In this document: piece after piece, positions 18,781 through 64,000 of the stretch
How the letters are laid out: every line of letters begins with the position of its first letter
Position numbering within the stretch: position 1 is the first letter of the stretch
Sequence record: NC_031927.1
DNA length: 64,000 bases
Direction: 5' to 3' (one strand)
The notes under the pieces: model-generated
Database searches by the model: none
Seen by the model: only the letters and a program-made list of their open reading frames with translations
Told to the model about the DNA's origin: nothing
Translations under genes and position numbers: made by a program

Positions 18781-18792
18781 TGTTTCATCTTC

Positions 18793-18868: not shown

Positions 18869-18873
18869 ACCAT

Positions 18874-18946
18874 TGCTCTGTAATTCAATCGGTAGAATGC
18901 CAAACTGTTAATTTGGAGGTTGCAGGTTCGAGTCCTGCCGGAGCAG
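18874..18946 (+). tRNA. tRNA-Asn(GUU)
   Basis: Acceptor tgctctg/cggagca; anticodon arm ccaaa-CT-GTT-AA-tttgg; GTTCGAGTC. Confidence 0.93.
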
Positions 18947-18961
18947 TTTAAACTTAATATT

Positions 18962-19486: not shown

Positions 19487-19512
19487 ATATGGTGTATTGA
19501 AAAATATATATT

Positions 19513-19830: not shown

Positions 19831-19878
19831 TAAAGGTTTTATTGATAAACTCTGCTATAATACCCACACAACCTTCTA

Positions 19879-20331
19879 TTGATAATGCTTGATTTTGAGT
19901 ATGCCCTCTTCACCAAAGAGGACCCAATTAAATTATTGAAAGACGCATCATCCAAACTTCCAATCCATAAGAAGTTTAAGATTGCTCCACATATTCGCAG
20001 AGCTAGTGCTGCTGTTAATAAGTGTAAAAAATTTAGAGACATTGTTACCAGTGAAGATAATGTAGTCTGTATTGATATTGGTACAACCTTCGCATCTTAT
20101 TTCGGTCGGAAAGTTGATAAAGGCATCTACTTGTCTATTCCAAAATCAGCAGCAAAGGAATATATTGAATTTTTAGAAGCTTCCTGTAAGGATACTATTA
20201 GAAGTGATAAATATATGGAGAGTATTACTAAACTACTTCTCTACCACTCTGATTATATTGATGCATTTGTGAAAGCATTTTTAAGCATTCGATTAGCACA
20301 GGGCGAACTGGATAAATTAAAATCTAATTGA
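19879..20331 (+). CDS. Hypothetical protein
   Basis: About 150 aa downstream of a TGCTATAAT box at about 19853. Confidence 0.6.
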   Translation: MIMLDFEYALFTKEDPIKLLKDASSKLPIHKKFKIAPHIRRASAAVNKCKKFRDIVTSEDNVVCIDIGTTFASYFGRKVDKGIYLSIPKSAAKEYIEFLEASCKDTIRSDKYMESITKLLLYHSDYIDAFVKAFLSIRLAQGELDKLKSN

Positions 20332-20332
20332 G

Positions 20333-37124: not shown

Positions 37125-37149
37125 GCCCCCTTCGGAAAGGGGTTTTTTT
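37125..37149 (+). terminator. Intrinsic terminator after the structured RNA
   Basis: gcccccttcggaaagggg + T run. Confidence 0.7.
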
Positions 37150-37180
37150 ATGCTATAATATATAATGTATTATTTGTGTA

Positions 37181-38056
37181 ATGGTAATGTATCATGAACG
37201 TATGAAGTTACGAAAAGATGCTTATTCTAAAAAGTTAGACAATGTAACATCGAGGTGCTATTTTGCAAATGGATTTGCAACTAGGATTAAAAATATTGTA
37301 AGTTGCCACAGAATTGCAAATAACGTTCAAGTTTATTGGGATGCAAATTGTAAACCATTTTACTATAAAAAATTAAATGAATACTTCCCTGATCTAGTGG
37401 AAACCGATGAGTATGTCTCAAAGACATGGAGACAAGGATGGAGATTAGCCACTTTTCCTGGAGAAATTGGGGAAGGTTTTTCAAATAAAGACGCAATTTT
37501 TGAAGAGTTTGATAGTCCAATTGTTATCCCATCTCATGGAAAGGGTCGTTGTATTGATTATGAATATCATAGAATTCCCCAACCAATTATCGATGACTAT
37601 CTTAAAATATTCTCTGAGTTGAGAATTAAAGATTCTTTTCTTGAGACTGCGGATAAGTTTGCTAAGGAAAATTTTAATTCTGAAACTGTTTCTGTGCATA
37701 TTAGAAATTGGGTTGACTTTGCACCTAGAGGAAAAATGCACACCCTATCTCCCTTCATTGACTTGATGGTAGAGCATCCAACATCAAAGTTTTTTGTTTC
37801 TACGGATAGTCCCAATAATATCAAAATCCTAAAAGAAACGTTTGGTGATGATCGCATTATTAGCTATTGTGGAACAGATCCATCATTTGATGTCTTTATT
37901 GATTTACTTCTCTTATCGAAGAATCGGAATTTGATTGGTTCTGTAATGAGCACTTTTAGTGAAGTTGCTTGGTGGTTAGGTGGAGCTACGGCAAAGGTCA
38001 AAATTGCTTATGGTCCCAAGACAATGAAGTATATGTACCCAAAACATCACATTTAA
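37181..38056 (+). CDS. Fucosyltransferase-like GT-B glycosyltransferase (NodZ/GT23-like)
   Basis: NGFATRIKN, VSVHIR, FFVSTDS, DLLLLS...LIGSVMSTFSEVA. Confidence 0.7.
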   Translation: MVMYHERMKLRKDAYSKKLDNVTSRCYFANGFATRIKNIVSCHRIANNVQVYWDANCKPFYYKKLNEYFPDLVETDEYVSKTWRQGWRLATFPGEIGEGFSNKDAIFEEFDSPIVIPSHGKGRCIDYEYHRIPQPIIDDYLKIFSELRIKDSFLETADKFAKENFNSETVSVHIRNWVDFAPRGKMHTLSPFIDLMVEHPTSKFFVSTDSPNNIKILKETFGDDRIISYCGTDPSFDVFIDLLLLSKNRNLIGSVMSTFSEVAWWLGGATAKVKIAYGPKTMKYMYPKHHI

Positions 38057-38096
38057 ACCATTTGTGCTATAATATATTTGTAGCAATCCATTTGTA

Positions 38097-39098
38097 ATGA
38101 AAGTAGCACTTATTACTGGGATCACAGGGCAAGATGGATCTTACCTAGCTGAACTTCTCCTTCAGAAAGGATATACAGTTCACGGTATTATCCGTCGTGC
38201 TTCTATGATTAACACCCACAGAATTGACCATATCTTTGACCGCATCACTCTCCATTATGGAGACCTTACCGATGCTTTGAGTATCGTATCTATTATTAAA
38301 ACAGTTCAACCAGATGAAATATATAACCTAGGGGCTCAGAGTCACGTTAAGGTTTCATTTGATCAGCCTGAATACACAGCACAGACCGACGCATTGGGCA
38401 CTCTAAGGGTGCTAGAAGCCGTCCGTCTTCTTGGTATGGAATCATACGTAAGAATCTACCAAGCGAGCACCAGTGAGCTTTATGGGCTAGTTCAGGAGAC
38501 ACCCCAGAAAGAAACCACTCCAATGTATCCACGATCCCCTTATGGAGTTGCTAAACTATATGGGTTCTGGATCATCAAAAACTACAGGGAAAGCTATGAC
38601 ATACATGCCTCTAGCGGTATTCTATTCAATCACGAAAGCTCACGCAGAGGAGAGACGTTCGTCACACGCAAGATCGTCCGAGCCTTGTCCCGAATTAGTG
38701 TGGGACTCCAAAGTGATCTACAACTTGGAAACCTCAATGCCCGACGTGACTGGGGACACGCCAAAGACTACGTAGAGGCTATGTGGTTGATGCTTCAGCA
38801 AGAGAAGCCAGATGATTATGTGATCGCAACTGGTGAGCAGTATTCTGTAAAGGACTTTGTTAATGCTGCAGCACCATACTTTGGGTTCAATATTGAATGG
38901 AGAGGTGAAGGTCTTGATGAGTTTGGATTCTGTCTCAATACTGGTAGAACAGTTGTAAAAGTCAATCCTAAATATTTCAGACCCGCAGAAGTAGAAACTC
39001 TTCTCGGTGATCCCACTAAAGCAAAGGAAGTTCTTGGATGGACTCCTACTTATACATTTAATGAACTAGTTGAAGAGATGGTACTTAATGGACAATAA
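38097..39098 (+). CDS. gmd: GDP-mannose 4,6-dehydratase
   Basis: [59 protein letters not shown]. Confidence 0.98.
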
Positions 39099-40011
39099 TT
39101 CCACAGTTGCAATTTTTGGGTCTGGTGGTCTAGCTGGAGGAGCAATCACCAGACAGTTTATAAACAAAAGACATAAACTACTCTTACCTCGCAGTAAAGA
39201 TTTAGATTTACGAGAACAAGCTGATGTTCGTGCTTGGTTCAAAGCCAATAAAGTTGATTATGTAATCCTAGCTGCTGCCCTAGTCGGCGGCATTATGGCT
39301 AACAAGACTCGCAAAGCGGAGTTCTTACACGACAATCTAATGATGCAGTGTAATGTAATTGACTCTGCTTACTATTCAGGTGTTAAGAAGCTCCTATTCC
39401 TAGGAACATCTTGCATCTATCCTGCTGGACGCCAACACCCACTAAAAGAAAATGAACTCCTTACGGGGGCTCTTGAGCCTACTAACGACGCTTACGCCAT
39501 CGCAAAGATCGCAGGAATCAAACAATGTGACTTCTACAGGGAGCAATATGGATTTGATGCTATCTCTATTATGCCTCCTAATCTATATGGTCCTGGAGAC
39601 AATTTCCACGAGGGATCAGGTCACGTCCTCGCATCGTTGATGAACCGCTTCCACAACGCCAAGGTGGCTGGTGAAGCCACTGTAGCTTGCTGGGGTGACG
39701 GAACACCTATGAGAGAGTTTCTCTTCTCTGAAGACCTAGCAGAAGCCTGTGCGTTCTTTATGGATAACTACAGTGACTACGGTCACGTCAATGTTGGAAC
39801 TGGTGAAGACATCACCATCAAACACCTAGCAGAGAGTATTGCAAAGGTTATTGGTTTTGAAGGAGAGATCCTATGGGACACTTCAAAACCAAATGGAAAT
39901 CCTCGCAAATTACTTGACAGCACTGTGGCTAATGAGTTAGGATGGAAGCCCAAGACCAGTTTTGAAGATGGTCTACAGAAAACTTACAACTGGTATTTAA
40001 ACAATGTATGA
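39088..40011 (+). CDS. fcl: GDP-L-fucose synthase/ColC-type epimerase-reductase
   Basis: [51 protein letters not shown]. Confidence 0.93.
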
Positions 40012-41155
40012 TTGGAAATTAATGGATGATACGGTCACACTTCGTGATCGTATGAAGATGGCTAAGTTTGTTCTAACTACTAGCCGACTAACACAAGGAC
40101 CACAAGTTCGTAAATTTGAGGAGCATTGGAGTGACTGGCTTGGAGTTAAACATTCTCTTTTTGTTAGTAGTGGTAGTACTGCCAACAGTCTTTTGGTATC
40201 TGCTTGGAAAGATCTAAATGATATTCCAGATGGTGCAAAGGTTATTGTTCCTGCCTGCACTTGGGTGACTAACATTGCACCAATCATTCAAAACAATCTA
40301 ACCCCAGTATTTTGTGATATCAATCTAAAGGACTTTAGCTTTGATATTAGTTCTCTTCAGACTATTGCATGTGAGCATAAAGATATCCGGGCAATCTTCG
40401 TCACACACCTACTAGGTTTCCCTGCACGGGTAGAGGAGTTTCATAAGATCTTCCCTAACGCAGACATCCTAGAAGACGTTTGTGAGAGCCACGGTGCCGT
40501 TATTGAAGGTGGGACTATGGCTGGTACATATGATGTAGGAGGGACATTCAGCTTCTACTTTGGTCATCATATGACTACTGTTGAGGGTGGTATGGTATCC
40601 ACTAACAATAGTGATATGTATGACTTGATGCGTATGAAGCGCTCTCACGGTTTATCTCGTGAGTCGGTTCATTCTAAAGAGTATGCGAAGATGTATCCCG
40701 AGATCAATCCACAGTTCCTCTTTATGACTGATGGTTATAACTTCCGTAATAATGAGATTGGTGCTGTATTGGGTCAGTCTCAACTAAAGCGTTTGGATAA
40801 TATGATCGTCAAGCGTAATGATAATTATAAGACATACTTCGAGATTGTATCTCTATACTCCCATCTATTCCATGTTCCTGCTTACATTCCAAATCGTATT
40901 AGTAGCTTCTGCTTCCCTCTAATCTCTAGGGACAAAGCAACTCATCTAAGACTACAGGAGTTGTTGACTGAGTATCGTGTAGAGTATCGCCCAGTTGTAG
41001 GTGGAAACTTACTCAAGCAGCCTTTCTTATCTGCTTATCACGCAGACTGCCCTAACGCAGACATCCTCCACGACCGTGGATTGTATGTTGGAAACAGTCA
41101 CTTTGTTGGTATAAGCCACTTACTAATGCTTGAAGAAATTTTGGAGCAACTTTGA
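40004..41155 (+). CDS. colD: PLP/PMP-dependent DegT-family enzyme with His in place of the catalytic Lys: ColD-like GDP-4-keto-6-deoxymannose 3-dehydratase
   Basis: LEDVCESHGA...GTFSFYFGHHMTTVEGG; 383 aa; adjacent to gmd and fcl. Confidence 0.75.
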   Translation: MYDWKLMDDTVTLRDRMKMAKFVLTTSRLTQGPQVRKFEEHWSDWLGVKHSLFVSSGSTANSLLVSAWKDLNDIPDGAKVIVPACTWVTNIAPIIQNNLTPVFCDINLKDFSFDISSLQTIACEHKDIRAIFVTHLLGFPARVEEFHKIFPNADILEDVCESHGAVIEGGTMAGTYDVGGTFSFYFGHHMTTVEGGMVSTNNSDMYDLMRMKRSHGLSRESVHSKEYAKMYPEINPQFLFMTDGYNFRNNEIGAVLGQSQLKRLDNMIVKRNDNYKTYFEIVSLYSHLFHVPAYIPNRISSFCFPLISRDKATHLRLQELLTEYRVEYRPVVGGNLLKQPFLSAYHADCPNADILHDRGLYVGNSHFVGISHLLMLEEILEQL

Positions 41156-41156
41156 T

Positions 41157-41951
41157 ATGACTATTTCTTTTAATTATTTGGGTAACCTGGGACACTTGGG
41201 AAACCAAATGTTTCAGTATGCCGCATTGATGGGTCTTAGCTCCAAGTATAATAGAACCTTTTGTATTCCACATCCCGATACATTTTCAACTGCGAGTTAT
41301 CAAGAAAATAGAAGCAGTATCTATAGCGCCTTTGATATCAAACCTCCACATGTTGGGATGAGTAAATTCAACCCAGTTTCAGAGGCACACTTTCATTTTG
41401 ATAACAACTTATTTGAGAACCTTCCACCCCAAGATATTGATCTTCGTGGATACTTTCAATGTGAAAAGTGGTTTAAGCATATTGAAGATGATGTGAGAAA
41501 GGCATTCACATTCAAGCCCGAGTATATGGAAGTAGCTCAGTTGATGCGAGATCAGTTAGATGGTGAAGTAATTTCTCTTCATATTAGAAGAACTGATTAT
41601 ATTACCAACCCAAATCATTATTGTATGCATATGGGTTACTATTTGAAAGCATTAAAAGTTATGCCTTCTGAGCCAAAGGTAATCATTTTTAGTGATGATA
41701 CTGAATGGGCAAAGGATCAGAAAGAGTTTCCTGATGATAGGTTCCTTGTATCCGAGACAAATTGTCCATACACAGATATGGCTCTGATGACTTTATGCGA
41801 CTACCACATCAATGCAAACAGCTCCTTCTCCTGGTGGGGCTCTTGGCTATCTAACAGCAAGAAAGTAACAGCTCCAAGTGATTGGTTTTCTGGTCCACTA
41901 ACTAGTAATAACTTATCTGATATTTATTGTGATGGATGGGAAGTAATCTAA
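41157..41951 (+). CDS. GT11 glycosyltransferase, copy 2 (fucosyl- or colitosyltransferase)
   Basis: LGNQMFQYA, LHIRRTDY, NSSFSWWGSWL; ATG 41157. Confidence 0.9.
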   Translation: MTISFNYLGNLGHLGNQMFQYAALMGLSSKYNRTFCIPHPDTFSTASYQENRSSIYSAFDIKPPHVGMSKFNPVSEAHFHFDNNLFENLPPQDIDLRGYFQCEKWFKHIEDDVRKAFTFKPEYMEVAQLMRDQLDGEVISLHIRRTDYITNPNHYCMHMGYYLKALKVMPSEPKVIIFSDDTEWAKDQKEFPDDRFLVSETNCPYTDMALMTLCDYHINANSSFSWWGSWLSNSKKVTAPSDWFSGPLTSNNLSDIYCDGWEVI

Positions 41952-42721
41952 TGGGAAAAAATTTAGTATGTCAGATCTTTTTTGATAAAAAATTGATTAC
42001 TGATTATAAAGTTCATGAAAAAGACCAGACAAGAGGTGAGGTTGTAACATCTAAGCATTTAGATAATGAGTTGTTCCAACATTCTCAAATACTTGCTAAA
42101 AGATACGCAGAGCGTGTAGGTGCGGATTACATCCTATTTGATAAACCACATATCAATTTTTATAATCCATCTCAAGAAAGATTTAGATTGATGGAAGAAG
42201 ACCATTGGGCAGAGACATATGATAATATATTATATGTTGACTGTGATGCGTTTATCTACAACGAATGCCCCAATATCTTTGAGGAGTATCCACAAGAAAA
42301 TTTAAGGATTGCTAGGGATATGAACCCAGCTATTCCTAATCAGGAGAATGTAATTGTTAGTGAGGTTGGTCTTGATAAAGTGCGCCAATCATATTTCAAT
42401 GCTGGAATTCTATTGATGCACTCATCCACACTTAGGGAATTAAAAAAGGTCATCAAATATAAGGAAAGATTTTCTCTCTTACCTTATGGTGATCAGTCCG
42501 AGTTAAATTACTGCACATTGAAGTATGACATCCCCCATACAGTAATGGACCAAAGATTCAACTCATATGACAGAGATGCATTTATCGGTCATCTATACGG
42601 TACGCAAAAGTTTGATGGACTATTCCATAGTGCATATCACCTGAAGAAAGCTAAAGAGCAAGCACTAGGTATCAAACCGAAGAAAAAGAAGCTACCATTC
42701 ACAGTAAAAACTAATTATTAA
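41951..42721 (+). CDS. GT8-like glycosyltransferase
   Basis: LYVDCD (DxD), YFNAGILLM, GDQSELN. Confidence 0.75.
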   Translation: MGKNLVCQIFFDKKLITDYKVHEKDQTRGEVVTSKHLDNELFQHSQILAKRYAERVGADYILFDKPHINFYNPSQERFRLMEEDHWAETYDNILYVDCDAFIYNECPNIFEEYPQENLRIARDMNPAIPNQENVIVSEVGLDKVRQSYFNAGILLMHSSTLRELKKVIKYKERFSLLPYGDQSELNYCTLKYDIPHTVMDQRFNSYDRDAFIGHLYGTQKFDGLFHSAYHLKKAKEQALGIKPKKKKLPFTVKTNY

Positions 42722-42725
42722 ACCA

Positions 42726-43295
42726 ATGACTGTTGATGTAAACTATTGGAGTACTTTCTACTCATCAAATCACACTCTAGATTCCTCCAACTTCTGTAGG
42801 TTTGTATTAGAGTACTTTAAAAATCAGTCTTCACTACGCATCCTAGATGCTGGCTGTGGTAATGGTAGAGATAGCTATGCCCTATCCAAATTACACATAG
42901 TAACTGGTATAGATACTGCCGACTATGTTCCTGAGTCAACAGAGACTTGCTCATTTGAGACTGGAGATTTCTGCACACATGATAAAGATTCTTACGATAT
43001 TGTGTATTCTAGATTTACTCTACACTCAATTACAGATGAGCAACAGGTAGAATTCATCAAGTCTATTGTAAATGCTGGGACTTTCTTATGCATTGAGTGT
43101 AGAAGTGATGGAGACATTGATACTGTAAGGGAGCATGGTGATGACCACTATAGAAACTTTGTAAGCTTTGTTCGCCTTCAGAGTATATTGTTGGAGAATG
43201 GATTTATAGTGCATGTTGCTGAAGAAAGTAGGGGATTTGCACCATACAAAGCAGAAGATCCAGTTTGTGTACGATTCATTGCGGAGAAAAATTGA
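42726..43295 (+). CDS. Class I SAM-dependent methyltransferase
   Basis: ILDAGCGNGRDS, YDIVYSRFTLHSI. Confidence 0.9.
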   Translation: MTVDVNYWSTFYSSNHTLDSSNFCRFVLEYFKNQSSLRILDAGCGNGRDSYALSKLHIVTGIDTADYVPESTETCSFETGDFCTHDKDSYDIVYSRFTLHSITDEQQVEFIKSIVNAGTFLCIECRSDGDIDTVREHGDDHYRNFVSFVRLQSILLENGFIVHVAEESRGFAPYKAEDPVCVRFIAEKN

Positions 43296-43825
43296 TGGCA
43301 GGTTATCCTGAAAAAGCAGAAAAGCTAAACACCACACTACTCTGGACTCTCGATCTTCTTGAGACTAGAGGTATTGATAAGTGGTTTGTATCTTATGGTA
43401 CTTTATTGGGTTTGATTCGTGATGGATCATGTATTGATGGTGATGATGATGTAGACATCTGCATTGACAAAGATTGTTGGGATGATGTATATGATCCAAT
43501 CAAAAAATTGAATAGACTCAATGAGCAGTATGTAAAAGAGAACATTATCATCACCAAAAGAACTGCGACATACTCACAAGTAGATTTTTATTGCTGTGAT
43601 GTAAATGAGCAAGGTGACTTCAATGATACATGGGAAGATGTTATTTGGAGTAGATGCTATAATGAGTCTGACAAAATTCCAACCATTGAGTTTCAGGGAA
43701 GACATTTGAATGTTCCTCATAATGCAATTGAAAAACTTTCTAAGCGTTATGGTTCTACTTGGAATCAGAGAATCAAAAGAGGAACTGAAGCCGGAGATGG
43801 TTATCGTAAAATAAAAGTATTATGA
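43295..43825 (+). CDS. LicD-family phosphotransferase
   Basis: WFVSYGTLLGLIRDG..IDGDDDVDI; LSKRYGSTW. Confidence 0.8.
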   Translation: MAGYPEKAEKLNTTLLWTLDLLETRGIDKWFVSYGTLLGLIRDGSCIDGDDDVDICIDKDCWDDVYDPIKKLNRLNEQYVKENIIITKRTATYSQVDFYCCDVNEQGDFNDTWEDVIWSRCYNESDKIPTIEFQGRHLNVPHNAIEKLSKRYGSTWNQRIKRGTEAGDGYRKIKVL

Positions 43826-44640
43826 AAAATGAAGTTATGAGACACGACCTAAAAGACACTACATTTATTATACCTCTACGCATTGAGAGTGGAGACAGAA
43901 TGCGTAATGTAATTACTTCATTATGTTATATACTATCAAACTTTGATACTCATATCATTGTAAAGGAGGGTGATACCTCTTCTATATTTCTTGAGGATGT
44001 TCTTCCACAAGTAAAAGATTTCATGGAAGTAGATGAGATTCCTAATCTATTACATGTCTTTGAGGACACGAGTGCTTCTGAGTTCCATAGAACTAGGTAT
44101 CTTAATGAGATGACTCATATGGCTACAACAAAGGTTGTGGTTAATTATGATTGTGATATCATCCTTCCCGTGGAGTCCTACATAAAAGCACAGGCAATGA
44201 TTATTGATGGACCTTCTGATGTGGTCTATCCATATGGATTCGGTAACTATGCTAAAATGGTAACCGTAGATGATTCAATTGTCTCTGAATTCCTAACTGA
44301 AGGATTCAGTATTAATCTCCTAGAAAAAACTACAAAGCTAAACAATGCTCGTTTTGGTTTCTGTCAGTTCTTTGATAGAGAGGTTTACATCAGTGGTGGC
44401 GGGGAAAACGAAAAGTTCATTGCATATGCTCCTGAAGATGAAGAGAGGGCATTTAGATTTATTACTTTGGGATATAAAGTAGATCGTATTGATCAATTTG
44501 TATATCACCTAGAGCATTCAAGGACACCCAATTCGTGGTATAATAATCCTCATATGCAGAACAATTTTGCCTTATGGGAAGTTTTACAGAAAATGGACAA
44601 GCATCAACTAATTGAGCACTACAACTTATACAATGGATAA
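43822..44640 (+). CDS. Glycosyltransferase (GT2/GT7 galactosyltransferase-like)
   Basis: YDCD DxD, GGENEKFIAYAPEDEER, YHLEH. Confidence 0.75.
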   Translation: MKNEVMRHDLKDTTFIIPLRIESGDRMRNVITSLCYILSNFDTHIIVKEGDTSSIFLEDVLPQVKDFMEVDEIPNLLHVFEDTSASEFHRTRYLNEMTHMATTKVVVNYDCDIILPVESYIKAQAMIIDGPSDVVYPYGFGNYAKMVTVDDSIVSEFLTEGFSINLLEKTTKLNNARFGFCQFFDREVYISGGGENEKFIAYAPEDEERAFRFITLGYKVDRIDQFVYHLEHSRTPNSWYNNPHMQNNFALWEVLQKMDKHQLIEHYNLYNG

Positions 44641-45460
44641 AAACAAAGCAATCGGAAAACTACGAGGAATCCCTAGGATCTTCTACATAAATCTGGACGA
44701 CCATACAGAACGTCGTCAGTATATGGAAGACCAGTTTGAATACTGGGGTATTCCTGAGGACAACTATACGAGAGTTCCTGCCCACGATGGTAGGGGTGAT
44801 AATGATTTGGGTGATGTCCTAAAAGGTAAGTATCCAGAGCTAATGACTTCCAGTGAAGTTGGATGTACCGTATCACACTTAAAGGCACTTAAGTACTGGG
44901 TTGATAACTATCCAGAGGAAGAGTATCTTGTGGTTATGGAAGATGATTGTGACATTTCAACAGCTGGCTACTGGGGCTTTACATGGAATGATTTTGCGCG
45001 TAAAGTACCTTATCACTTTGATGTAATTCAACTTGCCGTCATCAATCCCATTGAGATTAATGTTAAGCTTCATCTGAGATTCGTCAATGACTTCTCAACT
45101 GCCTGCTATATTATCCGTAAGCATCACGCAGAGAAGTTAGTCAAACTTCATTGTCGTGGTGATAAGTATAAGCTTGACCAGAACGTTAAGCCTCGTGCTG
45201 TTGCTGATGACTTAATCTACAACTCTGGTTTATCCTTTGCTATCCCCCTGTTCTTATATAAGATTGCTTTGGGTTCTAGTATCCATGATATTCACGTGAA
45301 TACATTCCACAAAAGTAGTCATGATGGTCTATGGCAGTTCTGGAAAGAACAAGCACCAACCATCCCAGATTGGTCACAGTTCTTTGAGTATGATCCATAC
45401 TATGGGACACTTCCACCCAGCCTAGTTGCTAAACAAGCTATCGAAGACCATAATAAATAA
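44633..45460 (+). CDS. GT25-like glycosyltransferase
   Basis: FYINLDDHTERR, GCTVSH, VVMEDD; ATG 44633. Confidence 0.85.
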   Translation: MDKNKAIGKLRGIPRIFYINLDDHTERRQYMEDQFEYWGIPEDNYTRVPAHDGRGDNDLGDVLKGKYPELMTSSEVGCTVSHLKALKYWVDNYPEEEYLVVMEDDCDISTAGYWGFTWNDFARKVPYHFDVIQLAVINPIEINVKLHLRFVNDFSTACYIIRKHHAEKLVKLHCRGDKYKLDQNVKPRAVADDLIYNSGLSFAIPLFLYKIALGSSIHDIHVNTFHKSSHDGLWQFWKEQAPTIPDWSQFFEYDPYYGTLPPSLVAKQAIEDHNK

Positions 45461-45498
45461 GGTAGCAGGAACTAAAAAAATACACTCTTCTTTATATT

Positions 45499-49626
<4,128 letters not shown>

Positions 49627-49660
49627 ATAAGATATATCAAAGTACTGATACCATTACATC

Positions 49661-51844
49661 ATGGCAGCCTTTAATTTTCCAGCAAACCCAAGTGTAGGGG
49701 ACCAAGTAACCAATGGAGGAGTTACTTATACTTGGGATGGTTACAAATGGAACACCACAACCGCACCATTTAGTGTAGGTGCTACTGGTGCTACGGGTCC
49801 ATTGGGGTTTGGTATCTATGCCTTTTGTAGGACTACATCTACTGGTGTCTTACTTCCAAATTATGGTAGTGGTATTTTAGGTGTAAACAGAGTATCAACG
49901 GGTGTTTATAGATATACACTTTCTCAACCATATAATAGCGCGGATTATATGGCTCAGGTTTCATTAGTATCCTCGGGTAATATTAATCCATCCGATTGGA
50001 ATGTTATTGTTGAAAATATTACACCAACAACATTTGATGTATTCACATATAGAGCAAACAATACTCCAATCAACCTAGAACACGCCGTTACTGTATATGG
50101 TGTAGATGGTCCTACAGGTACTGGTAGTGCCTATCAGTCTTGGTTGGAAGTTGGTAACTTTGGAACAGAACAGGATTTCATCAATTCACTACAAGGTCCT
50201 ACAGGAGGATCTGGTGGGCAAGGCAGCACTGGTGCTACTGGTCCCATTGGTCCCAATGGAGCCACTGGTCCCCAAGGTTTGGATGGAACATCCGTTGCTC
50301 TAAAAGGTACGGTTGATGATGCTAGTGACCTACCATCAATCCCAGGTACTGTTGAGGGTGATTTGTATGTTGTTCTTAATACTGGTGGTGGTTTTAATGC
50401 TGGTGATGGTGCTGTAAAAAATGACCTAACCACAGGCACTCTGGCTGATTGGAGTAATGTAGGTCCTCTACAAGGTCCTCAAGGAAATATCGGTCCAATA
50501 GGCGCAACTGGTCCCATAGGTTCTACTGGTCCCCAAGGTATTCCTTCTACTGATGGTGGCTTCTTTGTTCTTTCAGGTGAGAGAAGCGGACCTCCCGCTC
50601 TTAATCAATTCTTTGCGTGGGGTAATGGAGACAGTGCTGATAATGGAGTTCAAATCCAGGAAGGATGTTTCCTTGATTATGTTTCTATAACAGTAGAAAG
50701 ACCATTTGGAACTATTCCAGTTGAAGTTACTGCTTATGTAAATGGCTCTGCTACTATACTTAAAGCTATTGGTACCACTGGATCAAAAACATCAACATCA
50801 TCTGGTAGCCCTGTTGAGATTTTCCCAGGAGATTATGTAAATATTAGATGTTCTCAAACTGGTAACAACTCAACTGCTGGCGGAACTGTTGGTGGTTGTG
50901 TGGGTTCACTACTATTCTCTACCGCAGGTGCGCGTGGTGCTACTGGCGAAACAGGTCCTCCTGGTCCCCCTGATGGCGCTACTGGTGATACTGGTCCTGT
51001 AGGTCCTCTTGGTCCTGTTGGTCCTACTGGTCCTCTTGGTGCTACTGGTCCCGTTGGTCCTACTGGTATTGGTGCTCCTGGTCCTGATGGTCCCACTGGA
51101 GCTACTGGTCCTAATGGTCCTGCTGGTCCCGTTGGTACTGTTGTGTTGGGTACTGTTGCTGATATTGCTAGCCTGCCCCCATCTGCTAATGTTGGTGAAG
51201 GTTTTGTAGTAACTGCCGAAGCTAATGATGTATATGTTTGGAATGGTTCTTCCTGGAATAGTATTGGACCAGTTCAAGGTCCTATAGGTCCCGTTGGTCC
51301 TGCTGGTCCTCAAGGTGCTACTGGTATTAAAGAGCAGTCTTATATCAAGTCAACATTCCTAACCGAGTCAACTGTAAACTCATCAACAACATTCCAGTCA
51401 TTTAACATACTCAATGATTCTGCTATCCTTGAATCGGGTGGATATAGATATGCCGCAGAGATACCTGGAAGACAAGGTATTGGTGCTGGTGGTATTATTG
51501 TCCCAGAAACTGGGATCTATATGATTACTGCCTCACTATACTTCACAACACCTAGTGTGCAGAGAGCTAGTATTGGATTGAGATTTGCTATCGCAGAACT
51601 AGCAGATCCAGAAAATACAAATGCCGAGGGAGTTGCTTTACCAGAAACAGGAGCTATGGGATACATTAGATCTGGTTCAGGTCATAATGAAGCATCAGTC
51701 ACCCTTACAACTATCGCTAGCTTGGAAGTAATTCCTGGTGTTAGGGAAGATCAGGTTCAAATACAGTTGGCTAGATTGGCTTCGAGTGGTACTGTTAGTG
51801 TAGAAGCTAATCGTAGTATTATTACCATTACAAAAATTGCCTAA
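49661..51844 (+). CDS. Collagen-like fibre protein
   Basis: 727 aa; [19 protein letters not shown]-terminus; several Gly-Pro-X tracts; C-terminal domain homologous to that of the upstream gene. Confidence 0.85.
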
Positions 51845-51870
51845 ATATTTTATGAAGAATAAAGTATGAT

Positions 51871-52461
51871 ATGGCTATACAAATACACCGAGGGATATTG
51901 GGGTCACATTCTCCTTTGATTTTATTCACGGGAAGAGCATCAGATGGAACCACTTCCGCTAATGGGGCAAATAGAATAAATGGGATAAGCGTACAGTATA
52001 ATACTGATGATGCAGACTATGTTGATGTTATTGATGATAGTTTGACCACTTCAAACAACCATACAACATTTGATGTATATAAAGTTCATTATAGTGAATG
52101 GTTGGATGTTGATGGTAATTCTTTTGGCTCTGCCGAGAATGTTGTTCAGTATATTGAGCAACAAATAACAGCATCCCAGGATCGGATTGCGTTTACTCAA
52201 GCAACAGCACACACACTTACTGGTATTCCAGAGACCGTCAGTGCTTCTGTTGGTGTTGCATTCACATATAATGCAAACTACTACAATGGCGTTTCATACT
52301 TCTGGGATGAGGCATCTTTCCCATCTGGTGTGGAAGTTTCTCGTTATGATCGGAGGAGGATTAGTGGTATCGTCACACAGACTGGTTCATATACAATCAA
52401 CTTCCAAGTAGCAAATCACAATGGGACTGTCCCAACTAGCGTGATTGTTGATGTAACCTAA
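51871..52461 (+). CDS. Hypothetical protein with C-terminal Ig-like domain
   Basis: FPSGV...ISGIVTQTGSYTINFQVANHNG pattern. Confidence 0.65.
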   Translation: MAIQIHRGILGSHSPLILFTGRASDGTTSANGANRINGISVQYNTDDADYVDVIDDSLTTSNNHTTFDVYKVHYSEWLDVDGNSFGSAENVVQYIEQQITASQDRIAFTQATAHTLTGIPETVSASVGVAFTYNANYYNGVSYFWDEASFPSGVEVSRYDRRRISGIVTQTGSYTINFQVANHNGTVPTSVIVDVT

Positions 52462-52504
52462 AAGATATGCTATAATATCCAGGTACTTAACAAAAGATCA
52501 TATT

Positions 52505-52621
52505 ATGTTCGGTTTTACTCCTGAAGCAGAAATCCTTAATGCTCGTCTAGCAATGCTAGGTTTCGTCATCGCAGTCGGAACCTACGCAACTACTGGTCAA
52601 ATTATCCCCGGCGTATTCTAG
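52505..52621 (+). CDS. hli: High-light-inducible protein (38 aa, not in ORF track)
   Basis: MFGFTPEAEILNARLAMLGFVIAVGTYATTGQIIPGVF carries the AE.LN.RLAMLGF LHC motif and TGQIIPG tail. Confidence 0.95.
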   Translation: MFGFTPEAEILNARLAMLGFVIAVGTYATTGQIIPGVF

Positions 52622-52654
52622 GATACAGTCTAAAAAAAACTAAATAGATATAAT

Positions 52655-52680
52655 AAGAGGGATGTATACCCTCTTTTTTT
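52655..52680 (+). terminator. Intrinsic terminator after hli
   Basis: aagaggg-atgtata-ccctctt + T run. Confidence 0.8.
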
Positions 52681-52693
52681 GTAGGGAAAAATA

Positions 52694-52870
52694 ATGGTCT
52701 TATTGCTTTGCTTCTTACCCCTTATAATAATCTTTATATTAATGAAGTTTATTTTATTGGTAGAAGAGTCCCATAAAGAAATTACCTATGTACGACAAGA
52801 ACCAACCAGAGAACGAACATTTTTGGAAAACGTCTATGAAGACCTTGATGGCGAGGAAGATTGTGATTGA
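52694..52870 (+). CDS. Small membrane protein (58 aa, not in ORF track)
   Basis: MVLLLCFLPLIIIFILMK...FLENVYEDLDGEEDCD. Confidence 0.6.
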   Translation: MVLLLCFLPLIIIFILMKFILLVEESHKEITYVRQEPTRERTFLENVYEDLDGEEDCD

Positions 52871-52994
52871 TATTGAGGAGAAACTCCCAGGTCTCCTTGA
52901 TGAGTGGTACCGTGAGCACGGACTAGATACTCCACCGTGGAGACAAAATAAGCCATACTTTGATGATGATGGAAACATCATCAGACCTGATTAG
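52836..52994 (+). CDS. Small hypothetical protein
   Basis: LLDEWYREHGLDTPPW; start uncertain (52836 or 52848). Confidence 0.5.
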   Translation: MKTLMARKIVIDIEEKLPGLLDEWYREHGLDTPPWRQNKPYFDDDGNIIRPD

Positions 52995-53030
52995 ATATAA
53001 ATATCTCTGAAGAGAAGATTATATCTTACA

Positions 53031-54584
53031 ATGTCTCAAATTATATTCCCGAGTAACCCATCAGTTGGTGAATTTTATAATGTGGGTGATGTTACATATA
53101 AGTGGGATGGATCTAAATGGATCTCTACCAGCGTAGCCCCAGTAAATATTGGAGCAACTGGACCATCTGGTCCTGCTGGACCTACTGGAGCTACAGGATC
53201 AACTGTTGTTGATGGTAGTGATATCTCTGCTGGTGTAGTGACCGCAACAGAATTTGACGGTAATCTCAGTGGAAATGTCGCTGGCGATACTACTGGTATC
53301 CATAATGGGGATGTATATGCTAGAGATGGATCTAAAATTATATTAGAAACTGCTATTAATAATGGTGATACAGCACACTATACAGGCACAGTAACTGGCG
53401 ACGTAACTGGAGATACAACAGGAACACATTACGGAACCAATACCGGTCAGCAGCACGGAGATGTGTACACCAATGACGGTGGTCAGCAAGTCATAGATAC
53501 TGCTGCTATTCCATCTCCCCTATTCAAAGGTGATGCGGAAGGTTTAGATGGTGACCCAAATATACAAGTAACTAACCTAACAGTAGTTGGCTTAACTAAT
53601 GTTGGCGTTGTAACTGCTGCCGAAATAACTACAGATGATCTTAATGCTGATAGTGTAATTGCTGGGTTTGTTACATCAGTAAACTCATATACTAGTGGAA
53701 TCGCTACTGCTGGAAAGTTTTATGGTGATGGTTCAAACCTAACTGGAATAGCAACACAGTCTGGTGCTACTGGAGCCACTGGTCCCCAAGGTTCTCAAGG
53801 TGCTACTGGTATTCCTGGTCCTTTTGGTCCATATGGAATCACAGGAGCTACTGGTGCAACTGGTGTTGATGGTCCTGTTGGTTCTACTGGAGCCACAGGT
53901 GATCCTGGTTTAGCTGCTATGTGCTTCACATATAGGTATGATAGTGATACTGATACTAACGATGAGCCATTGAGTGGTCGCATCAGCTTCAACAATTCAA
54001 ACCCAGAAAATGCAACTGTTATTGCGATCAATGATACTAATGGAGATGCTGTTGATATCTCAAACTTCTTTGGTCTATTTGGTGCTGGATCTAAAGTTTA
54101 TATTCAAGAGGAGAGAGATGCTAGTAGCTTTATTCTTCTCACACTAAACGCAGGAGCTTCTGATCAAGGTGGTTGGTATAAGTTCACCAACTTTACAGTC
54201 AACATATCTGGTAATGTTACCTTTACTAACCTCAATAAGTTGATGGTTTGTGTTCAGCCACAAGGTCCAGCTGGTCCAACGGGCGCAACGGGTCTTACTG
54301 GAGCTGGAACTTCGGCAACATCATTCCAGTGGAACGATCATATCATCCCAGATTCAACGGAGTCTTATGATATAGGTTCAGCAGAATATAAAGTTCGCCA
54401 CCTATTTTTAAGTGATAACTCTGTTTATACTGATAGTGGGGAGGTTAGAGTTGGCTTCTCAACCCAAGTTGGAACATCAACCAAGATGCTAAAAGGAACA
54501 AAACTACAAGAGATTGTGGCTAATTCTGTTGACTTCGCAGACTTTAAAGTTAAGATGGCTTCGGAGGATTTTGGTTCCTTATGA
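53031..54584 (+). CDS. Fibre-like protein with short collagen tracts
   Basis: 517 aa; [18 protein letters not shown]; GATG tracts; [27 protein letters not shown]. Confidence 0.8.
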
Positions 54585-54628
54585 ATGGAGTATAAATAAC
54601 CTTAGGGAATCCATAGTATTATTACAAG

Positions 54629-57600
54629 ATGGCTTACAAGATTAATGGCGTCATTCGCTTAGCAGATAACGGAGACGCAAATTTAGGTTTAGTAACCGCA
54701 ACCAATATTAACTCCACTGGTGTAGCCACGGCTACGGAGTTTGATGGTAAGGTATCAAAGAAGGCTATAACCGAGCAGACCGAAGGTGATGATTCTAATG
54801 TTACTGGTGCCGATGAACTTCTAATTTATGATCAACAGACCGATTCCCTATTAAGAGTGTCTGTTGATGATTTTATTAGTGCGTCTGGTATTGGTACTTT
54901 AGTTAATGATTTTAATCATATTGATAGTGACTCACTAGTCGTAACTGGACTATCAACTATTGGTGGAGTTGAGATTGGTGCTGGTATTATTACAGCATCT
55001 GCAGGGGTTGGAGTTGTAACATTCTATGGTGATGGTAGTAATTTAGAAGGAGTTATTACTACACCTTCCATTGTTTCTACCACAGAGCCAACCACTAGAC
55101 CCAATGGTGATGACCTAGAACAGGGTGACCTATGGTTCTCTAGTGCTGCTGGCGAAGGGCAATTAAGACAATATACTTATTATAATGGTGCTTGGATTGA
55201 TTCCAACCCAATGAATGGTGGTACTTCTGTATATGCTGCAGTAGCTGGTGTATCTACTAATGTAAATGGAACTGGAATTGTAACTGCTAGCCAAGGTAAT
55301 TTTAGTGGTATTGTAACTGCAGGTTCTTTTATTGGCGATGGGTCAGGTCTAACTGGTTTAGGTGATTTGACTGGAGCCACTGGTGCAACTGGTGCAGATT
55401 CAATTGTTCCAGGTCCCCAAGGTTCTACTGGTGCTACTGGTCCTAAAGGTGATCAAGGTGATGCAGTAATTGGAGCCACTGGATCCACTGGTCCCCAAGG
55501 AGATATTGGTGCTTCTGGTGCTACTGGTCCTAAAGGTGACCAAGGTGATGCCGTAATTGGTGCTACTGGTCCTCAAGGAGATATTGGTGCCTCTGGTGCT
55601 ACTGGTCCTAAAGGAGACCAAGGTGATGCAATTATTGGTGCTACAGGCGCTACTGGTGACCAAGGTGATGAGGGTCCTGTAGGAGCCTCTGGTGCTACTG
55701 GTCCTAAAGGAGACCAAGGTGATGCAATTATTGGTGCTACAGGCGCTACTGGTGACCAAGGTGATGAGGGTCCTGTAGGAGCCTCTGGTGCTACTGGTCC
55801 CAAAGGTGACCAAGGTGATGCAGTAATCGGTGCTACCGGTCCTCAAGGTGATATTGGTGCCTCTGGTGCAACTGGTCCTCAAGGTGATATTGGTGCCTCT
55901 GGTGCTACTGGTCCTAAAGGAGACCCAGGTTCTGCTGGGGTTTCTGCTACATTAACAGCAGGTACATATCTATCCGGCGATTCATATAACGGCAGCACTA
56001 GTAGAACTTGGACAGTAGATGCTACTTCAGCAAATACTGCGTCTAAAGTTGTTGCTAGAGATGCTAGTGGTAATTCTAGTTTTAAGAAAATAACAGTAGA
56101 TACTGATTCCGATACTGATGGACAGGTAGCTGCACATTTCTATGGTGCGAATGGGTCTACGAATCGCGGTCTTGAAGTACGCCTTTCTTCGGCGGGTTCT
56201 ATAGATAATGCTAAGGTTATTTTAGATGCCAAACAAGCTGCAGATGGTGAACTTTGGATTGCTACTAGGGGTGTAGAAAGAGCTGCATTTGATAGTGGAT
56301 CTTTTAAAATGGGTGCGAATGTTGGCACTTCGCCAGAAGTTCTGATTAATAGCTCTGGTGATGCCACCTTCGCTGGCGATATCACCGCAGCTAGTTTTAG
56401 TGGTGATGGTTCTGGTCTAACCAACCTACCTGGTGGTGGTAGTCCCGGAGATCCTTCTGCTGCTTCTGCTGATAAACTAACAACATCTAGAACCTTATGG
56501 GGTCAAAGCTTTGATGGTACTGCTAATGTATCAGGTAATCTTACTGGTGTGACCAATATTACCTTATCAGGTACTGTTGATGGTCGTAATGTATTGGATG
56601 ATGGTCAAGCTGGTGATAACCTAATAACATTAAGTGGTGTTGCTCGCGATGCTACTAATCTAGGAACCTTCACAGGCGCTACTATTTCTGATAATGACAC
56701 CATTAAAGGAGCTTTACAAGACCTAGAGACCGCATTGGAATCAACTCCAGGCTCTCCCAGCGGTCCTACTGGTGGTGAGGCAGATAGTCTATTGCTAGCA
56801 GCACGTAATAGTACCAATGCAACTCACTATCTAACATTCGCAACCGCACGGACTGGACAGCAGTCTCAATATACTGATACTGGATTAACATATAACCCAA
56901 GCACAAATACTCTTAGTGCAACATTTAGTGGTAATGGTTCTAGTCTAACTTCACTCAATGCATCTAATCTTGGTTCTGGAACCATTCCCAACGATAGATT
57001 CCCTGCTGTATTACCAACAGTTAGTGGAGAAAATCTAACTAACTTACCTGGTAGTGGATCCCCAGGCGCTCCTGGTGCCGCTACGATTGCAGTAACTGAC
57101 GAATCATCTGACACAGAAAACTTCCTAGTATTCACTAATGATGCTGTAGGTAATGAGCTTCCAAAGACTGGAAGTAATTTAACATTTAATGCATCTACAG
57201 GACGGCTAACAGCCACTAGCTTTAGTGGTAATGGTTCTAGTCTAACTTCACTCAATGCATCTAATCTTAGTTCTGGAACCATTCCCAACGATAGATTCCC
57301 TGCTATATTACCAGTAGCTGATGGTTCTAACTTAACTAACATTAGTCGTTCTGACGTATCAACTAGTGTACAAGTAATTACAAATAATACTGCTAACGAA
57401 ACTGTATTTATTACCTTTTCTGACGGTCAATCAGGAACCCAAAGAATAGAAACTGATGTCGATCTTACTTACAATCCTTCGACAAATACTCTCAGTGCAA
57501 CATTCTCTGGTAATGGTTCTAATCTAACTAACCTAACTTCAGGTAACCTAGTGGGTGCTTTGCCTGCTATTGATGGTTCTTCTCTTACTGGAATTAATGC

Positions 57601-57754
57601 AGCAAAGGATGGTATATTCTACGAAAACGGCACAAATGTTACGCAGAATTATACAATCACTTCAGGCAAAAATGCTATGAGTGCTGGTCCAATCACTATT
57701 AATACCGGAGTAACCGTAACAGTTCCTACTGGATCTGAGTGGACAGTTGTGTAA
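54629..57754 (+). CDS. Long tail-fibre-like protein with collagen tract
   Basis: 1041 aa; GDLW...YYNGAWID; [11 protein letters not shown] repeats; FSGNGSSLT fibre repeats; C-terminal [26 protein letters not shown]. Confidence 0.85.
55589..55800 (+). repeat. Perfect 96-nt tandem duplication (about 2.2 copies) in the collagen tract
   Basis: actggtcc anchor at 55601, 55697 and 55793. Confidence 0.9.
56924..57313 (+). repeat. 93-nt direct repeat with 2 mismatches (56924-57016 and 57221-57313)
   Basis: Encodes [16 protein letters not shown](G/S)[11 protein letters not shown](V/I)LP. Confidence 0.9.
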
Positions 57755-58197: not shown

Positions 58198-58965
58198 ATG
58201 GCTAAAGGATTTACCGTCAAAGCAAAAGAACCACCCAAGGGTAAGGTTGCTGATCAAGTTGAAGAGTGGGATTATGCAAAGGCAAAGGAGATGCTCAGAG
58301 GTAAGAGCATTGTTTTCTGCCTCCCTGGTCGTGGCGTAAGCTATACCTACCTAAAGAACTTTGTTCAAATGTGTTTTGACCTAGTTCAAATGGGAGCATC
58401 TATTCAGATCTCTCAAGACTACAGTTCAATGGTCAACTTTGCACGTTGTAAGTGCCTCGGTGCTAACGTTCTACGTGGACCCGACCAGATTCCCTGGGAC
58501 GGTAAGCTCAAGTATGACTACCAGCTCTGGATTGATAGCGACATCGTATTCAACACCCAGAAGCTTCTACAACTTGTCCTTATGGATAAGGACATTGCTA
58601 CTGGTTGGTACTCTACTGAAGATGGTCGTACCACTTCCGTAGCTCACTGGCTAGAGGAAGATGACTTCGCCAAGAACGGCGGTGTTATGAACCACGAAAT
58701 GGTTGAAGGAATCTCCAAGCGTAAGAAGCCTTTCACTGTTGACTATGCTGGTTTCGGTTGGATCCTACTTAAGAACGGTGTGTTTGAGCACCCCGAGATG
58801 AAGTACCCCTGGTTCGCTCCCAAGATGCAAGTCTTTGATTCAGGCGCTGTACAAGATATGTGTGGTGAAGATGTTAGCTTCTGCCTAGATGCTATCGCTG
58901 CTGGCTTTGAGATCTGGTGTGATCCTCGCATCCGCGTAGGACACGAAAAGACCCGAGTCATCTGA
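58198..58965 (+). CDS. Conserved cyanophage GT-A-fold glycosyltransferase-like protein
   Basis: VFCLPG, VNFARC, LWIDSDIVF, GEDVSFC, VGHEK. Confidence 0.8.
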   Translation: MAKGFTVKAKEPPKGKVADQVEEWDYAKAKEMLRGKSIVFCLPGRGVSYTYLKNFVQMCFDLVQMGASIQISQDYSSMVNFARCKCLGANVLRGPDQIPWDGKLKYDYQLWIDSDIVFNTQKLLQLVLMDKDIATGWYSTEDGRTTSVAHWLEEDDFAKNGGVMNHEMVEGISKRKKPFTVDYAGFGWILLKNGVFEHPEMKYPWFAPKMQVFDSGAVQDMCGEDVSFCLDAIAAGFEIWCDPRIRVGHEKTRVI

Positions 58966-63126: not shown

Positions 63127-64000
63127 ATGATTTCATCAGAAACCAAGATTTTACTTAAGCGTTCTGGCGTTCCAGGACGTATTCCATCCTTAGCGGACCT
63201 AAAACTAGGCGAGTTGGGTATCAACTATTATGACGGTAAGGTATACCTCCGTCAAGAAAATGATGTAGTTGGTTCCCGTATCATCGAGCCTGGTCAGGGT
63301 GACGATATTGGTAGGACTATTTTCGTAACCGTAAATGGTAACGACAACAACTCCGGTCTTAACGAGAGAGACTCCGTAAGAACCATCAAAAAAGCCGCTG
63401 AGTTAGCTCAGTTTGGCGATGGTATCAAGGTGTATCCTGGTCAGTATATCGAAGACAACCCCATTACATTCCGCGATTTGGTTGCGGTTGAGGGTATGGA
63501 TCTTCGTAACGTCCTAGTTACTCCTGCTAATCCAGAGAAAGATTTATATTTAGTTGGTGACGGTTTCCACGCAACTAACCATTCATTCGTATCAAACCAA
63601 GATTCTCGCGATGCTGCCGCGATCATCTCATTCCGCCCTCTAGAAGGAACCGCATCTGATCGCTACTTTGATGCTGCCCGTCTAATCAGGGACAACCTAA
63701 ACTTCATTTCAGGCGAAGCTGTAGGTTTCTTGACTAGTGGCTATTCAGGCTTTGCTGCTGGTCAAAGATCTCAAGATGCTGCTCGTGCTATTGAACTCAA
63801 CACAAACTTTATTAGTGAAGAGTCCTTCCAGTATATCAACAGCCCAGATTATAGGGGTCCAGCATACACTAATCCAGATATCAACCAGTGTCGTAGTGAC
63901 CTAAAGGATATTCTAGCTGGATGGAGATATGACTTAATCTCTGATGGTAACTCCGAGTCAACTGGTGTAGGTCTAACCTACTACGCACCAGTCAAGTTCA
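63127..64000 (+). CDS. Large virion structural protein, truncated by the window end
   Basis: MISSETKILLKRSGVPGRIPSLADLKLGELGINYYDGKVY...IFVTVNGNDNNSG...TIKKA...IKVYPGQY; TATAAATA at about 63059; no stop before 64000. Confidence 0.8.
   Translation, partial: MISSETKILLKRSGVPGRIPSLADLKLGELGINYYDGKVYLRQENDVVGSRIIEPGQGDDIGRTIFVTVNGNDNNSGLNERDSVRTIKKAAELAQFGDGIKVYPGQYIEDNPITFRDLVAVEGMDLRNVLVTPANPEKDLYLVGDGFHATNHSFVSNQDSRDAAAIISFRPLEGTASDRYFDAARLIRDNLNFISGEAVGFLTSGYSGFAAGQRSQDAARAIELNTNFISEESFQYINSPDYRGPAYTNPDINQCRSDLKDILAGWRYDLISDGNSESTGVGLTYYAPVKF

Follow-up and report, generated by a model that had tools for sequence, protein, structure and literature searches.

The genome of Synechococcus phage S-CAM7 (Kyanoviridae, Mazuvirus) carries an island of ten tightly packed sugar-related genes on the plus strand (g1-g10), which we predict to be a self-contained cytoplasmic glycan-building cassette with a transcription unit of its own, producing GDP-L-fucose and probably also GDP-L-colitose. 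The acceptor of the resulting glycans is not decidable from sequence alone; the most likely one, at somewhat less than an even chance, is the lipopolysaccharide or lipooligosaccharide (LPS/LOS) of the host, which the island would remodel. The island occupies positions 37181-45460 of the window, i.e. the whole 64,000-nucleotide stretch of DNA analysed here, which is 100% identical to the S-CAM7 record (NC_031927.1/KU686212.1) and is numbered as record position minus 124000. Genome and annotation of the phage are already public. Immediately downstream, at 45499-57754, lies a block of genes for collagen-containing fibres, the ATG of the first of them (c1, 45499) following the stop of the last island gene (g10, coding for a family GT25 glycosyltransferase; 45460) after a gap of 38 nt. 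An earlier note on the same DNA had described ten sugar-related genes at 37.2-45.5 kb with fibre genes starting within 40 nt, and had proposed that the island decorates the phage's own fibres rather than host LPS. Both observations are confirmed, with refined gene assignments, and it is the choice of acceptor that we weigh below. Between two S-CAM7 isolates, the island and fibre blocks are 98-100% identical, a length change in c1 aside, and the island proteins are 99.6-100% identical.

The nucleotide-sugar chemistry of the island is indicated by g2, g3 and g4 (Table 1). The product of g2 passes the curated equivalog model for GDP-mannose 4,6-dehydratase (Gmd; TIGR01472) with 539.7 bits at a cutoff of 415. 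That of g3 matches E. coli Fcl (PDB 1bsv) at 8e-92 and scores 421.7 bits on NF047922, which is under the cutoff of 500 of that model. In a ranking of PDB structures, g4 is closest to ColD/WbdK (2gms, 1e-49), followed by the CDP-sugar E1 enzyme (9e-33) and perosamine synthase (1e-22). Moreover, it carries a His in place of the lysine that binds pyridoxal phosphate (PLP) in aminotransferases, and this His aligns with the catalytic His of ColD, which is mutated in the H188N entry 3b8x. Taken together, the closest match and the residue at the PLP-lysine position favour a ColD-type 3-dehydrase over an aminotransferase and suggest that the cassette probably makes GDP-L-colitose besides GDP-L-fucose. 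No paper linking a GDP-colitose pathway to cyanophages was found in the literature searched.

The remaining island genes code for predicted transferases and modifying enzymes. While g1 has no match in a Pfam scan, a profile built from five homologues retrieves NodZ (5e-8) and FUT8 (6e-4) from the PDB. The GT25 assignment of g10 scores 46.2 bits (Pfam cutoff 24), whereas the LicD match of g8 (28.2 bits, cutoff 22.6) covers only 31 residues of the N-terminal motif region. The RefSeq name of g7, adenylylsulfate kinase, does not fit, as only families of S-adenosylmethionine (SAM)-dependent methyltransferases match. None of the ten island proteins contains a membrane-spanning segment, and the island encodes no flippase, polymerase or ligase, i.e. 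no Wzx/Wzy O-antigen machinery. The acceptor must thus already be present at the cytoplasmic face.

Based on these enzyme families, Gmd would convert GDP-mannose to GDP-4-keto-6-deoxymannose, from which the Fcl-like enzyme would form GDP-L-fucose, with the ColD-type 3-dehydrase on the same route probably also leading to GDP-L-colitose. Two fucosyl-type transferases (GT23-like and GT11) and three GT-A transferases (GT8-like, beta-1,4-galactosyltransferase (B4GalT)-like and GT25) could then assemble a short oligosaccharide, which the methyltransferase and the LicD-type enzyme would cap. The putative acceptor is the host lipid A-core or LOS at the inner face of the cytoplasmic membrane, and the outcome would be an altered surface of the infected cell, which doubles as the receptor of S-CAM7. 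Adsorption of the phage is LPS-dependent, since host galE (LPS) mutants resist S-CAM7 (10.64898/2026.10.08.757702), and LPS remodelling is the published reading for islands of this type (PMC1079782, PMC7029224, PMC12801897). According to the Pfam descriptions, GT25, GT8, GT11, LicD and Gmd/Fcl/ColD are families of the LPS/LOS outer core and of O-units. The deoxy-sugar chemistry, a position and promoter resembling those of auxiliary metabolic genes, and the wide distribution of such islands without collagen further support this reading. To our knowledge colitose occurs in LPS only, and we know of no protein glycan that contains it.

The LOS outer-core sets of Haemophilus, Neisseria and H. pylori combine GT25 (Lic2/LpsA/beta4GalT), GT8 (LgtC), GT11 (FutC) and LicD enzymes. 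The S-CAM7 island shows the same combination of soluble enzymes, which would likewise act at the cytoplasmic face without a polymerase or flippase of their own, but the likeness is one of families only, with the S-CAM7 GT8 below its cutoff, LicD partial and the GT25 clade phage-specific. With the GDP-L-colitose pathway of E. coli O55 (Gmd, ColD/WbdK, ColC; 2GMS) the island shares Gmd, a His-type ColD-like enzyme using PLP or pyridoxamine phosphate, and an Fcl/ColC-like reductase; it differs in that its reductase is nearer to Fcl than to any ColC tested and in that Wzx/Wzy are missing. Phage counterparts are found in Prochlorococcus phage P-SSM2 and other cyanomyoviruses, those of P-SSM2 having been known as LPS-type sugar gene clusters since Sullivan 2005 (PMC1079782). 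The P-SSM2 island lies at the same genome position and contains Gmd, epimerases, GT11 and a 3'-terminal GT25 (63% identity to that of S-CAM7) followed by the gene of a high-light-inducible protein (hli), whereas S-CAM7 adds the ColD-type dehydrase, the NodZ-like transferase, LicD and the methyltransferase, and carries fibre genes between GT25 and hli.

Island and fibre genes differ in their putative transcription signals. An intrinsic terminator closes the upstream unit ahead of g1, and predicted sigma-70-like extended -10 elements follow it (Table 1). The motif NATAAATA, the reported cyanomyovirus late promoter (PMC2984593), is found 22-39 nt 5' of the ATGs of c1, c4 and c5, and at this distance from the corresponding genes of relatives as well, in line with the label "late genes" given earlier to the fibre block. 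The fibre gene of phage ACG-2014f is likewise preceded by NATAAATA, and the late-promoter-like motif is kept 5' of the fibre gene at the c1 position in loci L002, L005-L008 and L010. On the plus (coding) strand inside the island no NATAAATA was found. Given the terminator and the TGcTATAAT element before g1 and the late motifs before c1, c4 and c5, island and fibres look like separate units with differing promoter types, between which read-through may still occur. Timing cannot decide the acceptor, however, because early enzymes could still meet late substrates; the literature on P-HM2 and on field transcriptomes gave neither promoter nor timing for the island. CTAAATA was considered as a further late motif, but the window shows no enrichment of it. 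The 11-nt string TTGCCTAAATA occurs at 49618-49628, about 32 nt before the c2 ATG, and again at 51836-51846, about 24 nt before the first ATG of the p3 open reading frame (ORF), and may be a variant late promoter.

The fibre block comprises the four large collagen genes noted earlier, as Pfam Collagen matches c1, c2, c4 and c5, between which lie a PKD-like ORF (p3), hli and small ORFs. Counting runs of at least five, the window fibres contain 270 G-X-Y triplets. The described dominance of Gly-Ala-Thr and Gly-Ser-Thr is borne out: GAT heads the triplet counts of each of the four proteins, with GST in second place in c1. Thr occupies 47% of the Y positions overall and 57% in c1, Lys only 8 of 270. 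This Thr richness is real, since the fibres of four unrelated phages (Pioneer, A5-4, GAP31 and ChuuTotoro) reach just 10-23% and are dominated by Gln and Lys at Y. The C-terminal 400 amino acids of c1 are paralogous to c2. Homologues of c2 are confined to S-CAM7 isolates in our search, and a locus search with the single sequence of the c5 N-terminus returned close relatives only. A tblastn search with the collagen stretch of c1 hit S-CAM7 only, with the query masked by the low-complexity filter. Compared with its counterpart in the other S-CAM7 isolate (L002:24319-28515), c1 (45499-49626) shows a length difference of 24 residues (eight triplets) in its collagen part.

To see how firmly the two blocks belong together, we compared the neighbourhood of GT25 across phages. 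A GT25 homologue is present in 98 of about 470 cyanomyovirus records (about a fifth), and homologous, variable islands lie at the same genome position, with the phage-specific GT25 at their 3' end. ACG-2014f (Atlauavirus) carries a syntenic Gmd-Fcl-ColD-GT11...GT25 island, behind which stand hli, ferredoxin, a second hli, a tail fibre without collagen and psbA. S-T4 and P-SSM2 have the same layout, GT25 leading to hli/ferredoxin and further on to psbA, again without collagen. Among 50 IMG/VR loci sampled, fibre homologues stand directly 3' of GT25 in six only, namely those with a GT25 identity of 70% or more. The 44 more distant ones usually retain the g9-GT11-GT25 trio, but in none of them does a collagen ORF lie closer to GT25 than about 8 kb. 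Over its first ~100 amino acids, c5 shares 45% identity with the beginning of the non-collagen tail fibre of ACG-2014f, so that c5 is the positional counterpart of that fibre. The genes c1-c2-p3 thus appear to have been inserted between GT25 and hli in the S-CAM7 lineage alone, and it is their presence there that accounts for the abutment to collagen. The co-occurrence of island and collagen, which the earlier note had named as a check, therefore breaks down beyond the closest relatives, where the two blocks vary independently, an outcome that the note had listed as refuting its proposal. In the reverse search, homologues of any of the ten island proteins were found in only 2 of 120 viral loci with at least seven consecutive G-X-Thr triplets. 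One of these two is an unrelated IMG/VR contig (L169:1-3519), in which a long G-X-Thr stretch adjoins Gmd (2e-138) and an Fcl-like gene. In the slot behind the island, related genera carry hli-ferredoxin-fibre-psbA-psbD, S-CAM7 fibre genes and one hli; neither psbA nor psbD is annotated anywhere in the S-CAM7 record.

A census of the whole record revealed six collagen-like ORFs, all Thr-rich (29-57% Thr at Y), in exactly two clusters. The second cluster lies outside the window in the baseplate/tail-fibre module (record 12.9-17.8 kb) and consists of gp014 (204 triplets) and gp015 (47), directly after which come a GT4 glycosyltransferase (gp016), a GT4-like protein, a 2OG-FeII_Oxy_3 oxygenase (collagen genes to oxygenase, L187:12914-20410) and a tail fibre of 1958 residues. 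The phage 2OG oxygenases are of this type. ACG-2014f has the same collagen-GT4 arrangement, and among isolates a gp014-like collagen is found in only 49 S-CAM7/ACG-2014f records. GT4 itself is matched by 53 records, and among the matches listed all are S-CAM7 or ACG-2014f except S-CBWM1 and two small metagenomic records. In the unrelated S-CBWM1, the GT4 gene (32% identity) lies directly 3' of a collagen-containing tail-fibre gene. We assembled 39 GT4 loci, 38 from IMG/VR plus that of S-CBWM1, which form nine clusters at 70% identity. A collagen ORF on the same strand lies within 1 kb of GT4 in 15 loci (five clusters) and within 2.6 kb in 21 (six clusters). Of the 120 random Thr-rich collagen loci, three carry this GT4. 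Collagen-GT4 is a conserved gene pair, and it is the best comparative evidence obtained here that phage transferases may have Thr-rich collagen clients. If the collagen fibres are glycosylated at all, this GT4 outside the window would be a better-supported enzyme than the island. Two caveats apply, namely that among solved structures gp016 comes closest to glucosyltransferases of small molecules (glucosylsucrose synthase and tetrahydrobiopterin glucosyltransferase) and that a strong sigma-70-like site lies just 5' of gp016. We met no discussion of the pair in the literature, in which no search was aimed at it.

Several points count against host LPS/LOS as the acceptor. The function of cyanophage sugar islands is without any experimental demonstration, and since the phage is lytic, what it would gain from a remodelled host surface is a matter of conjecture. 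Soluble cytoplasmic transferases share their compartment with assembling virions, both S-CAM7 collagen clusters adjoin transferase genes, and Thr at Y is two to five times as frequent as in other phage fibres. Sigma-70-like matches are no commoner than in shuffled sequences, which renders the promoter assignment of the island weak. Furthermore, the GT25 clade has no close cellular relatives: a genome-contig search with GT25 gave nothing, and a profile search of cellular genome contigs returned only four oddly binned contigs of metagenome-assembled genomes (MAGs). GT25 is therefore an old phage gene and not a recently captured host LPS gene, which speaks to its origin and not to its acceptor. 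The four MAG contigs (L230-L233) are labelled Verrucomicrobiales, Methanobacteriota, Parachlamydiaceae and "bacterium", and are most likely phage contigs binned into MAGs.

Some of these points favour the proposal of the earlier note. In the form weighed here, the island transferases would act in the cytoplasm, either ahead of fibre assembly or in its course, and O-glycosylate Thr in the G-X-Thr triplets of c1, c2, c4 and c5 as well as of gp014/gp015. The product would be a methylated fucose/colitose glycan, which would lend stability to the hydroxyproline-free triple helices and serve to mask the fibres or to tune them, and GT4 might add the first sugar. We regard this as possible but, on balance, doubtful. 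The elevated Thr content, the solubility of every island enzyme and the grouping of six collagen ORFs in two clusters next to transferase genes speak for it, as does the 38-nt gap between GT25 and c1, which is kept in five of the six closest loci (L005-L008 and L010; L009 has a c2-like collagen ORF instead), yet the island is widespread without collagen neighbours, rarely accompanies long G-X-Thr runs and differs from the fibres in promoter type. The collagen/GT4 pairing, which recurs down to 32% identity, also favours it, together with the presence of both the GT4-collagen cluster and the Gmd-Fcl-ColD island in S-CAM7 and ACG-2014f, although these shared gene sets count as one event because the genera are related. 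The tie drawn earlier between GT25 and the procollagen galactosyltransferases is not supported, as a profile of 13 phage GT25 sequences matches COLGALT1 only at a non-significant E of 0.12-0.16; together with the rarity of Lys at Y, this led us to reject a COLGALT-like route, whose acceptor is hydroxylysine formed at Y positions by a lysyl hydroxylase. That colitose is familiar to us from no protein glycan also counts against fibre decoration by the island. What gains support is the general idea that phage transferases may act on Thr-rich collagen-like proteins of the virion, given that two collagen clusters adjoin glycosyltransferases and that the collagen-GT4 pair recurs, and what is not supported is its application to this island; the enzyme families, which are those of LPS/LOS, and the separate promoter types lead us to place host LPS/LOS ahead of the fibres. 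A combination of both elements, in which GT4 (with the GT4-like protein and the 2OG oxygenase) primes Thr or hydroxylated residues of the six collagens and the island then adds fucose/colitose, methyl and phospho groups to the growing glycan, is unlikely; were it true, an abundant marine virus would carry sugar-coated, hydroxyproline-free collagen fibres.

Precedents for such glycosylation exist. In the exosporium of Bacillus anthracis, BclA carries mostly G-P-T repeats with glycans from dTDP-rhamnose-derived sugars. The S-CAM7 fibres resemble this surface-filament protein in their Thr-rich Y position and hydroxyproline-free collagen repeats, but are dominated by G-A-T and G-S-T; a Pfam scan of the fibre proteins turned up no BclA-like family, and no direct comparison was made. 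The capsid of the chlorovirus PBCV-1 and the fibrils and collagen of mimivirus are glycosylated by virus-encoded pathways with Gmd, GDP-fucose synthase, several transferases and a sugar methyltransferase. S-CAM7 has predicted counterparts of all of these, and mimivirus also has collagen-like proteins; both, however, are viruses of eukaryotes, and the match of the GT25 profile to mimivirus R655 is marginal (E 0.009). Among phages, mycobacteriophage transferases modify their own capsid and tail-tube proteins, as detected by mass spectrometry (Freeman et al. 2023, as cited in PMC12801897). There, phage-encoded transferases act on structural proteins in the cytoplasm, as is proposed for S-CAM7, but they belong to other transferase families.

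Two further acceptors were considered. The glycans might be transferred to another host structure (exopolysaccharide, S-layer or outer-membrane glycoproteins, type IV pilin), or the island might maintain a GDP-sugar pool as auxiliary metabolism. Auxiliary metabolic genes around the island (peptide deformylase, CpeT, hli) would agree with this, and S-CAM7 binds strongly to host type IV pili, above two other cyanophages (10.1101/2025.09.20.677514); pilin genes are annotated in S-CAM7 (L187:33681-33983) and ACG-2014f (L004:32023-32406). Nevertheless, no specific gene indicates such acceptors, and five to six transferases plus capping enzymes exceed what the upkeep of a pool needs, so that we consider this explanation improbable. 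Still far less probable is a glycosylation of modified phage bases for restriction evasion. Phages are known to build multi-sugar glycans on DNA with GT-B transferases (PMC13326640), and the possibility has been raised for cyanophage transferases (PMC12801897), but the S-CAM7 record annotates ThyX only, without a ThyA-like dCMP/dUMP hydroxylase/hydroxymethylase or a dedicated dNMP kinase cluster, and the phage has DNA methyltransferases instead. Neither GDP-6-deoxyhexoses nor LicD is known to take part in the modification of DNA. As of 2010, there was no evidence of 5-hydroxymethylcytosine or DNA glycosylation in cyanomyoviruses (PMC2984593).

Large marine myoviruses infecting cyanobacteria and SAR11 commonly carry sugar islands, and the choice of acceptor matters beyond S-CAM7. 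If such islands rebuild the host surface, they would change who infects or grazes the infected cell. If they coat phage fibres, this would affect how stable and sticky virions are in the ocean and how they recognise their hosts, and abundant marine phages would join mycobacteriophages and giant viruses as examples of virion glycosylation. Apart from indicating a probable phage-encoded GDP-colitose pathway, the analysis provides two targets for glycoproteomics, namely the island and the conserved collagen-GT4 gene pair.

Table 1. Predicted genes and transcription signals of the S-CAM7 sugar island and fibre block (window coordinates).
Feature	Coordinates	Strand	Assignment or remark
Intrinsic terminator	37127-37149	+	6-bp GC-rich stem and T run; closes upstream unit
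Putative sigma-70-like extended -10 elements	37151-37166	+	TGcTATAAT, then second TATAAT; ~20 nt before g1
g1	37181-38056 (annotated start 37187)	+	GT23-like (NodZ/FUT8-like) fucosyltransferase candidate
g2	38097-39098	+	GDP-mannose 4,6-dehydratase (Gmd)
g3	39088-40011	+	GDP-fucose synthase-like epimerase/reductase (Fcl, or homologous colitose synthase ColC)
g4	40022-41155	+	ColD-type GDP-4-keto-6-deoxymannose 3-dehydrase
g5	41157-41951	+	GT11 (alpha-1,2-fucosyltransferase family)
g6	41936-42721	+	GT8-like transferase, weak (Pfam 21.5 bits, below cutoff 24.3)
g7	42726-43295	+	SAM-dependent methyltransferase
g8	43295-43825	+	LicD-family phosphotransferase candidate
g9	43822-44640	+	GT-A transferase with invariant DxD; weak B4GalT likeness
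g10	44723-45460	+	GT25; conserved 3' end of cyanomyovirus sugar islands
Late-promoter-like motif AATAAATA	45452-45459	+	39 nt before c1
c1	45499-49626	+	1375-aa fibre; helical N-terminal part, 138 collagen triplets (57% Thr at Y)
c2	49661-51844	+	727-aa fibre protein containing collagen
p3	51916-52461	+	small protein, weak PKD-like match, without collagen
hli	52505-52621	+	high-light-inducible protein; directly 3' of GT25 in other genera
Terminator-like hairpin	52655-52675		bidirectional; next strong terminator after 37127-37149
Late-promoter-like motif TATAAATA	52996-53003	+	27 nt before c4 longest-ORF ATG (53031)
c4	53082-54584 (annotated start); longest-ORF ATG 53031	+	collagen triple-helix repeat protein
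Late-promoter-like motif TATAAATA	54591-54598	+	before c5
c5	54629-57754	+	1041-aa fibre containing collagen

Further sugar-related genes lie elsewhere in the window. A third cluster (15497-21598) starts with a weak GT25-like ORF (15497-16213), a GT4-like ORF (16188-17132) and a second GT11 (17185-17934), followed by four tRNA genes, a 2OG-FeII_Oxy_3 oxygenase (18962-19486) and a cytidylyl/adenylyl-transferase-like protein (20333-21598). Just 3' of the fibre block, a hypothetical protein (58198-58965; phrog_1574) is weakly similar to a family of phage glycosyltransferases (4e-5). At the end of the window (63127-64000), a 12.5-kb ORF begins that continues to record position 199633 and codes for a hypothetical protein of 4168 amino acids; with TATAAATA ahead of it at 63059, its product is probably another very large late structural protein.

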